A DNA stretch of 64,000 bases from Auanema rhodensis (lineage: Eukaryota; Animalia; Nematoda): positions 7,254,001-7,318,000 of the forward strand of contig OZ059898.1 in assembly GCA_964057225.1 (NCBI GenBank), in the 5' to 3' direction. The notes beneath the pieces were generated by a model. It made no database searches and was not told the DNA's origin. It worked only from the letters and a program-made list of their open reading frames with translations. How positions within the stretch are numbered: position 1 is the stretch's first letter; each line of letters begins with the position of its first letter. The position numbers and the translations under genes are program-made. Below are positions 35,237-39,000 of the stretch, in pieces.

Positions 35237-35628
35237 ATGACATATCATCTTGAATGCTCTTAAATCTAAAAGCCTTGTAAAATTATTGAATGAATGTTTT
35301 ATAGTTAAATGTTGGCGTTAATATGTTGAAGGCAGGTGACCAAATTGGAACATAATAAAAGGGACTCAGACACTGTACCAAATTTCCATCTTCTTGATTA
35401 AGCGTGAACGCTGGGTTCAACTTTATTCAGATTATGACATATCATCTTGAATGCTCTTAAATCTAAAAGCCTTGTAAAATTATTGAATGAATGTTTTATA
35501 GTTAAATGTTGGCGTTAATATGTTGAAAGCCAGGTGACCAAATTAGAACATAATAAAAGGGACTCAGACACTGTACCAAATTTCCATCTTCTGGATTAAG
35601 CGATAACGCTGGGTTCGACCTTATTCAG
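35237..35628. repeat. Two-copy tandem duplication, period 197 bp
   Basis: ATGACATATCATCTTGAATGC...TTATTCAG starts at 35237 and 35434, with only a handful of differences between copies. Confidence 0.95.
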
Positions 35629-35679
35629 GTCACGCACCGACAGAACCCTCGGACATGGCACGAACTTCATCAGCGCCCC
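35559..35679 (-). ncRNA. Candidate box C/D snoRNA (alternative: body of a tRNA-derived SINE)
   Basis: Minus strand reads GGGGC-GC-TGATGA ... CTGA ... CTGA-GTCCC-TTTT: C box at 35667-35672, D box at 35564-35567, terminal stem GGGGC/GTCCC, then a T4 terminator. Confidence 0.5.
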
Positions 35680-36091: not shown

Positions 36092-39000
36092 TTAATTTCT
36101 TCGCCAGTTGTTGGAGTCAGATCCTCCATCCCTAGGCTTATTCATTGGTGGACGACGATTACGATCCATTGGTGGTCGATCCATGTTGCGATCCATTGGT
36201 GGTCGGTCCATGTTGCGATCCATGTTACGGTCCATGTTACGGTCCATGTTACGGTCCATGTTGCGATCCATGTTGCGATCCATGTTACGATCCATGTTGC
36301 GATCCATGTTGCGATCCATAGTTCGGTCCATGGTTCGGTCCATGGTTCTGTCCATGGTTCTGTCCATAGTCCTCTCCACATTACGATCATTGCGATCGAA
36401 GCCACTCATGTCACGGCGAGGCATAGGCTCGGACTTTTCTGGTATTCCACCCTTTCCAACTTTGGTGAAGCCCTTATCTTCAGTAGCAGAAGTACCAGAA
36501 GGAGCTTGGTCAGCGCGTTTAATAACATTTCCTCTGCTCCACCTATCTTCGTTCTGAGTTGGAACCATTCGAGGAGCAGGTCTAGAAAACTCTGGTCTAG
36601 AAAACTCTGGTCGTGAGGGAGCTTCGTTTCTTTCTTCTGCAAAGAATAAAAATACATAACATAGAAAAAATAGAAAACGTACCTGGAATATTTTCCTTCT
36701 TGATGACATTACCTCTGCTCCATTTATCGGCTGGAGCTTGGTTACCACGGAACATGGATCTAGACCCGAAATCTTCACGGGACTCGCGGGGCTCACGAGA
36801 TTCACGAGGCTCACGGGATTCGCGTTGTTCACGAGCTGGTGGGGCTCTATGTCCGGAGCGCCAGTCGTTATCTTGCATAGACTTAGATTCCGTATCATCT
36901 CTTCTTCTTCTTTCAGGATCACGAATATCACGAGCAGCTTTCCATTGCTCTTCAACGACTTTTTGGCGTTGTCTTTCATCCTCCTCACGCTTTTGCTTCT
37001 CCTTTTGAGCCTTTTCCTATAAATATATACGCATAAAAGTACGCATATAATATAGAATAACTTACAGTGAGCCAATCTTCTTGTCTTTTCTTCTTTCTAT
37101 CTTCAGCTCTTTCAGATAGACGAGAAGATCTAACAGCTTCAAGCTTGTCACGCCAATCACATAACTTCTTTGCGAAGTTGTCTTCATTATTATCTTTAAC
37201 AGATTGAATCCATTGGTTAGCCTCGTCACGAATGGCTTCCAAACGATCCCATGTTTTAACAGCGCTCTCATGAGCATCACTTTAATGAATCAGAGAATTA
37301 AGAAAATAAAAAATTATACTAACATGGCTTTTTGAATGCGTCGTTCCTCATAGTTTTCGTGTGCGGAAGGCGCATCAGATATTCTCTTATTCATAATAGC
37401 CTTTCTCTCCAACATTTCTTCTAAGTGAATAGCGCGAACGTGGTGATCGAAAGTCTTCTCCTGTTGTTGGAGTCGTTTTTGAGTTTCCATACGTTCCCTA
37501 TCCAATCGTTCTCTCTGTAGGTAACATGTACTTGACGATGAATATAATGGTTTCTTACCTGCTCGCGAAGAACGGCTTCTGGATCCATATCTTGGAAAGC
37601 GCTTTCTCCCTTCTCTTTGATGATTGCCTGATATATAGCAGATTGTTGCATACGGCGAATTTGATCCTGACGAATTTTGCGCTGAATCTCTTCTTGTTCA
37701 ACTTGCTTGCGCTTTCTTTCACTTTCGATATTTTCCTGCTCAAGGCGTTTCATCTCTTCGGCACGTTTAGCCTCTTCCTTTTTCAGAATCTCAGCTTGAA
37801 CCTGTTGAGTTCTCTCAGCCTTAGCGCGCTCTGAGCTCTCCTTATAGCTCTCGATCTTACGACGGCGCACAAGAATGCGGTCAAGTTCCTGTTGTCGATT
37901 TCGTTCGTAGTTGATAGCGTGTTGTTTCACCTAGAATATATGTATCATCTCAAGACTTAATACACCTTCATACCCTAGCAACCATCTCTTCTTTACGCTT
38001 ATCTCCATCGAGAAGTTCAACGGTTGTTCTTAGCTTGTTGTACATAAGCTCCAGATGAGCACGAATACCTTCTACTCCAAGCTGTGAATCATCCCCTAAA
38101 AATATTTTTTTAATATTATGCCATTATTTATATTTGTATTTACCTGTGAAGCCATCAGCTTCTTCCAGATCAACACCACCAGCTAAAGTGGCATCCGCAG
38201 CACCAAAACGAACACATCCCGAACGATGATCAATTTGAGCACGCACATAGCGATGCTTAGAAACATCAACTACCAAACGCTCCAATTGAATTTCATTGTA
38301 GAATGGAACAATTGACTGAATTCTAGCCCAGCTTATGGAATCATAAATAACAGCAATCTAAAAAAATAAATCAACAAATATATTTTAAAAGCTTTTAAAC
38401 TTGTTTCAAAGCCTTTGTAGCTACAACATATCTCAAGGACTCGACATATTCCTTGTGCTCAGATTGGGTAATCAGTTGAAGCTCTTTTTCAACATCATGA
38501 GCTAGTCTAAAAAAATACACGATACATGTATACTTAAAAAATATTGTAACCTCAAGGGAGCAAAATTGTTCTCCAATAGCTTGTAAAGTGACTTGGCCGA
38601 ATCAGAAGCAAGCTCAGGGATACCAAGACGAGCACACTCTTTTAGAATTCCAGCACGAATTGGAGCAATAGGGAGACGAAGCAAGTTTGATAAAAGTCTA
38701 AAATATTTCCATTACTATTGGTCTTCCGTATTACTGAATTCAGAAGATATTCCAGTTGGACAAATCAATATCCCGTTTCGATCAAAGTACAACCCATGAT
38801 AAGAATTGTACATAGACAAATTTAGAAACGGCGCATATGGGAACCGAACCATAAACTAATTCATATGGTTCACACGTTATCCAATACACTACTGATTCAT
38901 ACTCACCTGATATTGGATGCATGTTGATCTTCAATATCCAAGTGACGAGTTAAGTCGGAAGGAGCATCGGCTCCGTCTGGAATAGCTAAGGTAGCCAGCA

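Follow-up and report, generated by a model that had tools for sequence, protein, structure and literature searches.

We examined a 64,000-nucleotide (nt) stretch of the nematode Auanema rhodensis (assembly GCA_964057225.1, contig OZ059898.1, positions 7,254,001 to 7,318,000), hereafter called the window, in which the eIF3a gene lies on the minus strand from ~40292 to 36093. The open reading frames (ORFs) of its exons match the PCI-region proteins of strongylid nematode eIF3a with 75–80% identity. One intron of this gene, which begins with GTGAGT, ends with TTTTAG and is flanked on both sides by exons that translate to eIF3a PCI-region peptides, probably hosts the gene for a box H/ACA small nucleolar RNA (snoRNA), a predicted guide for one pseudouridine of 18S ribosomal RNA (rRNA).

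The long intron of the eIF3a gene

An original prediction, made from the window sequence, had singled out this intron as a 209-nt outlier among short and more AT-rich introns, and had placed a highly structured RNA in it. The outlier is confirmed by four RNA-type runs from the same organism, whose contigs skip exactly 209 bases with CT..AC ends on the plus strand and likewise skip the neighbouring eIF3a introns of 43, 44, 46 and 49 nt. The GC content of the long intron is 0.35, compared to 0.14–0.31 in its neighbours. Taken together, the skipped bases, the short neighbours and the GC contrast show that the intron is real, spliced and an outlier in its gene.

On the sense strand the intron folds at −52.6 kcal/mol (z = −2.17), a stability that 3 of 200 dinucleotide shuffles attained, whereas the antisense strand reaches only z = −0.83; the expected strand preference was seen. 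The minimum free energy (MFE) fold holds three local hairpins that had been proposed earlier, namely GAACCATA/TATGGTTC, CCGTTTC/GAAACGG with its inner GTACAATTC/GGGTTGTAC, and the CTGAATTCAG apex. The proposed excess of folding energy over shuffled controls exists, but it is modest and a weak finding alone; it is covariation that sets the element above chance.

Conserved hairpins and H/ACA anatomy

The flanking exons were searched one at a time, and the upstream exon of 48 amino acids (aa) retrieved ORF fragments of other nematodes, whose contigs (numbered with L) were then compared. An intron at the same codon is 163 nt long in L001 (identical to L131) and 167 nt in L130; it measures 109 nt in L132, more than 550 nt of unrelated sequence in L003, 75 nt in L004, 53 nt in L010, 184 nt in L005, 469 nt in L007 and 650–730 nt in L006 and L011, and L002 has none. 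Local alignment of the window intron with that of L001 gave a score of 47 compared to 17 ± 2.5 for shuffles, and L130, compared later, aligns in the same manner. None of the orthologous introns of L003, L004, L005, L006, L007, L010 and L011 could be aligned with the window intron above chance. The element is absent from the 109-nt intron of L132 by inspection, and the 184-nt intron of L005, read by eye, offers no acceptable pocket geometry. We also trained a covariance model, R1, on the hinge plus the 3′ hairpin without using target information; the loci of L003, L004, L005, L006, L007, L010, L011 and L132 contained no match to it.

Other local introns of L001 and L130 are either missing or ~36 nt long. 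Both loci (L001:8880–10008 and L130:409–1667) are without two of the window's five local introns, and their only long introns (163–170 nt) bear H/ACA elements. L002:1–3327, a Joint Genome Institute (JGI) metagenome contig, holds eIF3a with no intron at this place, two breaks in 3.3 kb and a 514-aa ORF; the sequence either belongs to an intron-poor relative or derives from a transcript.

The conserved portion is the 3′ 125–133 nt of the intron. Its first ~60 nt have no counterpart in the relatives except for a 5-bp remnant, ACCAU/AUGGU, in L001. The long-range closing stems of the original prediction, TATTGG/CCAATA and CGTGT/ATACG, cannot be conserved because this part has no counterpart in L001 or L130; they are missing from the MFE and centroid folds, as is the hairpin GATATT/AATATC, and the 3′ partners of the closing stems are the guide strand and the upper stem of the conserved 3′ hairpin.

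Alignment of the orthologous introns and a search for covariation, which had been put forward as a check, proved informative. In alignment A3 of the three sequences (window, L001 and L130), the 3′ hairpin has 16 pairs with 89.6% of cells paired, and 7 of the 16 pairs are changed on both sides, a degree of covariation that none of 500 column shuffles reached. Sliding the 3′ partners by 1–3 columns lowered the pairing to 31–50% and left no compensatory changes. The lower stem, for example, reads UCCA/UGGA in the window but UUCAA/UUGAA in L001. In contrast to these changing stems, the loop strands (A/G)CUGGAAUA and CCA(A)UAGU, the latter continuing with (A/U)A, are invariant in the three species, and the hairpin is followed by A-ACA (A-AUA in the window). 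This combination of covarying stems and unchanging single strands is the hallmark of a guide RNA.

The anatomy of the conserved portion points to the same class. The H/ACA consensus places an H box, ANANNA, in the hinge and an ACA three nt from the mature 3′ end. The original prediction had seen no H/ACA layout in the intron, yet its 3′ 131 nt read as hairpin, hinge, hairpin and tail, and the copies in the window, L001 and L130 all fold in this way over 127–133 nt. The orthologues in L001 and L130 carry canonical boxes, AUAUCA and ACA. The distance from the end of the upper stem to the following box is 13–16 nt in every copy and for both boxes: for the 3′ hairpin 15 nt in the window, 14 nt in L001, 15 nt in L130 and 15 nt in a paralogue in L130 (described below), and for the 5′ hairpin 15 nt in the window, 15 nt in L130 and ~13 nt in L001. 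Such stem-to-box spacing reportedly defines an H/ACA pocket, a rule associated with Ganot, Bortolin and Kiss in 1997; the top of the pocket is expected about 14–16 nt before the H or ACA box. The positions of all parts are collected in Table 1.

Table 1. Features of the long eIF3a intron and of the predicted snoRNA (positions in the window)
Feature	Positions	Strand	Basis or detail
Host intron of eIF3a, 209 nt, GT..AG	38698..38906	-	RNA-run contigs join 38697 to 38907 exactly
Predicted H/ACA snoRNA, ~131 nt, intron positions 76-206, ends inferred	38701..38831	-	fold, alignment with L001 and L130, covariance model
5′ hairpin	38773..38831	-	folds; lower stem CCGUUUC/GAAACGG, upper stem GUACAAUUC/GGGUUGUAC, internal loop 13 + 7 nt
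H-box position, AUAUUG	38766..38771	-	aligned to AUAUCA of L001 and L130; starts 15 nt past the 5′ upper stem
3′ hairpin	38708..38760	-	lower stem UCCA/UGGA, 11-position upper stem UCUUCUGAAUU/AAUACGGAAGA
5′ guide strand of pocket, ACUGGAAUA	38748..38756	-	invariant in three species except first base, G in L130
3′ guide strand of pocket, CCAAUAGUAA	38712..38721	-	CCA(A)UAGU conserved
ACA-box position, AUA	38704..38706	-	aligned to ACA of L001 and L130; 15 nt past the 3′ upper stem
Extra 5′ hairpin, apex GAACCAUA/UAUGGUUC	38832..38889	-	folds alone at −17.8 kcal/mol; largely gapped against L001 and L130

The 5′ hairpin occupies the corresponding place in L001 and L130, and its lower stem differs from copy to copy (CCGUUUC/GAAACGG in the window, CCCUCG/UGAGGG in L001 and CCCUCUU/AAGAGGG in L130), while its loop sequences are not conserved and its pocket has no consistent rRNA target; its role is probably structural only, for assembly of the ribonucleoprotein (RNP). 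The extra hairpin further 5′ is species-specific and probably outside the mature RNA.

We saw neither a tRNA-like leader nor an upstream promoter motif or oligo-T terminator at the element. Its place on the sense strand of its host, where it abuts the splice acceptor (the AUA box is followed by UUU and then by the UAG of the 3′ splice site), is consistent with processing out of the spliced intron. By analogy with known intronic H/ACA snoRNAs, dyskerin, Nop10, Nhp2 and Gar1 would bind the two hairpins after splicing and shield ~131 nt (38701–38831, minus strand) from exonucleases, and the rest of the intron, including the species-specific 5′ hairpin, would be trimmed off.

A rival reading is that the intron holds a cis-acting structure for eIF3a splicing or expression, e.g. 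autoregulation by occlusion of the 3′ splice site. Such a role would suit a strand-specific structure whose last conserved stem ends 10 nt before the AG and whose box and tail extend into the UUUUAG acceptor. Not all copies show this overlap, however: the distance from box to AG is 6 nt in the window and 7 nt in L001, where box and acceptor overlap, but 13 nt in L130, where they do not. Furthermore, L132, L003 and L004, with flanking exons 81–88% identical, manage without the element, and its absence from L132 and L003 argues against a structure needed for eIF3a regulation; another intron holds a paralogue that shares the loop core; and invariant single-stranded loops within covarying stems suit a trans-acting guide. 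We therefore consider a cis-acting structure quite improbable. In a related idea, raised because the ACA-type box and the 3-nt tail sit on the acceptor, assembly of the H/ACA RNP would compete with recognition of the 3′ splice site by U2AF and so couple the output of eIF3a mRNA to the supply of the dyskerin complex. If true, this coupling would link ribosome biogenesis and a translation initiation factor by feedback, but we find it very improbable and regard the overlap of box and acceptor as a by-product of the tiny size of nematode introns rather than as a mechanism. The original prediction had offered an unclassified intronic non-coding RNA or a cis-autoregulatory structure. The intronic RNA on the sense strand stands, and the analogy with translation-factor genes that host snoRNAs was the right call for it; the labels unclassified and cis-autoregulatory do not hold.

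Predicted target in 18S rRNA

To look for a target of the putative H/ACA snoRNA, we retrieved metazoan rDNA from metagenome contigs by a 28S primer sequence and delimited the small-subunit (SSU), 5.8S and large-subunit (LSU) rRNAs by Rfam on two complete units (L081 and L017). Guides were scanned for contiguous pairs from the top of the pocket, with at least 3 on each side and at least 9 in total. The guides of the window, L001 and L130 gave one site each per rRNA set, which is SSU GUCUGG-U-UUAUUCCG with 3+7 bp. The guide strand UGGAAUA pairs with UAUUCCG of 18S rRNA, and CCA pairs with the UGG just 5′ of the target U, which is position 1273 of 1755 in the SSU of L081. As read from these sequences, the internal loop of the 3′ hairpin would be the pseudouridylation pocket, with both conserved strands paired to 18S rRNA on either side of one U, and dyskerin would convert this U to pseudouridine as in known intronic H/ACA snoRNAs. 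Guidance of one 18S pseudouridine is thus the most likely predicted function of the element.

Across the retrieved rDNA loci, 28 SSU copies had a match at this site, and 5 of them carry the UUUAUUCC variant that the guide suits; UUAAUUCC is the common eukaryotic form, and we take UUUAUUCC to be the nematode form. The target U is presumably equivalent to Psi1367 of human 18S rRNA, by a count on the human sequence; the same count also reproduces Um1288, Um1326, Gm1328, Am1383 and Cm1391. In human 18S rRNA, Psi1367 is a documented modification for which SNORA15 and SNORA83 are the assigned guides, and some of the validated human H/ACA snoRNAs in the snoSeeker table have antisense elements of no more than 3+7 nt (PMC6466398, PMC1636440).

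The 18S assignment is mainly supported by a paralogue that was found blind to the target and converges on the same uridine. R1 scored 89 bits (E = 1e-17) on the window copy, which is one of its training sequences, and beyond the three training sequences it gave one match, L130:688–764, with E = 0.007. This paralogue lies in the preceding eIF3a intron of L130 (605–773), which is 169 nt long compared to 49 nt for its counterpart in the window, and it has a full H/ACA layout with the H box AGAGUA and an ACA box. Its pocket strands, GUCGGAAUA and CCAGUUUUAA, differ from those of the main element, and every difference raises the complementarity to the same 18S U; the result is a match of 4+9 bp, which 12 of 1000 shuffled guides equalled.

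The extra 5′ hairpin was also tried as a third guide. It would form 6+6 bp with LSU GGAGUC[U]AGCAUGU in L017 but not in L081; ~9% of shuffles were equal, no H/ACA box follows, and the candidate was rejected. As a source of 18S rRNA, viral contigs yielded none, and a literature text search for the 18S fragment returned nothing useful.

Weighing of the snoRNA assignment and comparison with known systems

A further possibility is that the intron holds another kind of structured RNA (a ribozyme, small Cajal body RNA, telomerase-like RNA or mirtron), a chance fold or a transposon relic. No curated family matches the element, which leaves room for such a reading. In searches of the intron against Rfam 15 at E ≤ 10, both within 2.5 kb and as 146 nt, nothing was found, the best being chance matches of 12–15 bits, and there was no match in eight related loci or in L130:600–1170. 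This null led us to reject twister, to which the intron had been likened, together with other ribozymes, known nematode snoRNA families and riboswitches. A box C/D snoRNA, with a C box RUGAUGA near its 5′ end, a D box CUGA near its 3′ end and a terminal stem, was rejected since the intron has no UGAUGA, its lone CUGA lying within a hairpin apex, and a telomerase-like RNA since it has no telomere-template k-mer; on both of these layouts the earlier negative statements were correct. A multi-copy element or miniature inverted-repeat transposable element (MITE) was rejected as well: neither hairpin core recurs in the window when up to 3 mismatches are allowed, and R1 finds no second copy there. 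The orthologous position and the covariation rule out chance and a MITE, and a microRNA precursor would need longer, less interrupted hairpins. We consider this group of explanations extremely improbable. A literature search for egl-45 with snoRNA found no paper.

Several observations nevertheless weigh against an H/ACA snoRNA. With no curated family to lean on, the class rests on a reading of anatomy, and the folding z-scores are unremarkable (−2.2 in the window, −1.5 in L001 and −0.9 in L130). The 5′ hairpins of L001 and L130 fold with nearly no pocket. MFE folds shut part of the 3′ pocket by ACUG/UAGU and leave a 5×4 loop; this pairing is also conserved, so that some of the loop conservation could be structural. 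The 3+7 bp match is weak alone, as 36–71 of 500 shuffled guides were as good for the window and L001 and ~21% for the downstream copy of L130, and the rRNA contigs are not those of this genome but were taken to be nematode by their 18S signature. The four RNA runs yield spliced mRNA alone, with no intron contig, and are uninformative on small RNA that is not polyadenylated. The element occurs in three species only, and the closest relatives by exon sequence (L132 and L003) are without it. Finally, the hinge of the window copy has no strict ANANNA: its H box is AUAUUG, which keeps A1 and A3 but has G at position 6, and its ACA box is AUA.

With both boxes off consensus in this species, activity may be reduced. 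The altered boxes also suggest that the window copy could be a decaying relic that has lost box function (A6 to G in the H box and ACA to AUA) and is a passenger of its intron. The boxes deviate only in the window copy, those of L001 and L130 being canonical, a 60-nt species-specific hairpin has been added upstream, and the element was lost or never present in the nearest relatives L132 and L003. On the other hand, pairing in its stems, with 10 of 11 and 4 of 5 pairs formed, is as good as in the relatives, neither guide strand is damaged, and the intron has been kept long in a gene whose other introns measure 43–49 nt. AUA, a variant at the middle position, occurs in working H/ACA RNAs, which also counts against a relic. 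We regard a relic as unlikely, although the window copy may be weakened or dying even with stems and guide strands as intact as in the relatives. A box H/ACA snoRNA remains our preferred interpretation; it is listed in no database, has canonical orthologues in two related nematodes and belongs to a well-known kind of RNA.

Three more distant relatives have a different conserved block in the orthologous intron, which is 470–730 nt long (L011:3181–3320, L006:2127–2265 and L007:3241–3560). The block, GCAUGCA...UGCAUGC-AAAAGCA...ACAUGA, also reads as an H/ACA layout with 15–16 nt spacing, and the L007 intron holds two tandem related copies of it. We found no convincing rRNA target for this block. 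Elsewhere in the window, at 36150–36400 (minus strand), the C-terminal eIF3a exon ends in a long tandem peptide repeat (MDRT/MDRN, ~17 times) encoded by 12-nt DNA repeats. Just downstream of the 3′ end of eIF3a, and outside the gene, a match to the nematode C/D snoRNA ceN40 (35559–35678, minus strand) reaches the Rfam gathering level with 58.3 bits and E = 2.7e-11; it is the sole match of the whole window at that level.

Like intronic H/ACA snoRNAs of animals and nematodes, such as those of C. elegans and SNORA19 in human EIF3A, the element lies in sense orientation within an intron of a gene of the translation machinery and has a hairpin-hinge-hairpin-tail layout of ~130 nt. Further likenesses are the distance of 13–16 nt between upper stems and boxes, a two-part guide that occupies an internal loop, and stems that covary around invariant guides. 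Unlike them, neither the element nor its relatives match Rfam, the boxes in the window are AUAUUG and AUA, and the box is only 6 nt from the 3′ splice site. The shared host gene, eIF3a, is the only link with human SNORA19. The predicted action on the same conserved 18S stretch is a likeness to human SNORA15 and SNORA83, the guides of Psi1367, to which the site here is presumably equivalent. No similarity of sequence or model to these two was detected, and the guide here fits UUUAUUCC, not UUAAUUCC. The antisense element of SNORA83 has 5+7 nt (PMC6466398), of the same order as the 3+7 or 4+9 here.

In summary, our data leave the knowledge of how snoRNAs work unchanged, but add an unannotated, lineage-restricted predicted H/ACA snoRNA and would account for the fourfold length of one eIF3a intron relative to its neighbours. 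They also make a testable prediction, a pseudouridine at the conserved 18S position GUCUGG-U-UUAUUCCG, and the string expected in the species' own 18S rRNA is GUCUGGUUUAUUCCGAUAAC. The element further provides a small case of snoRNA turnover in one host gene: three species carry it and their nearest sampled relatives do not, one species has a duplicate in the adjoining intron, and in a more distant group the same intron holds a different H/ACA-like element.

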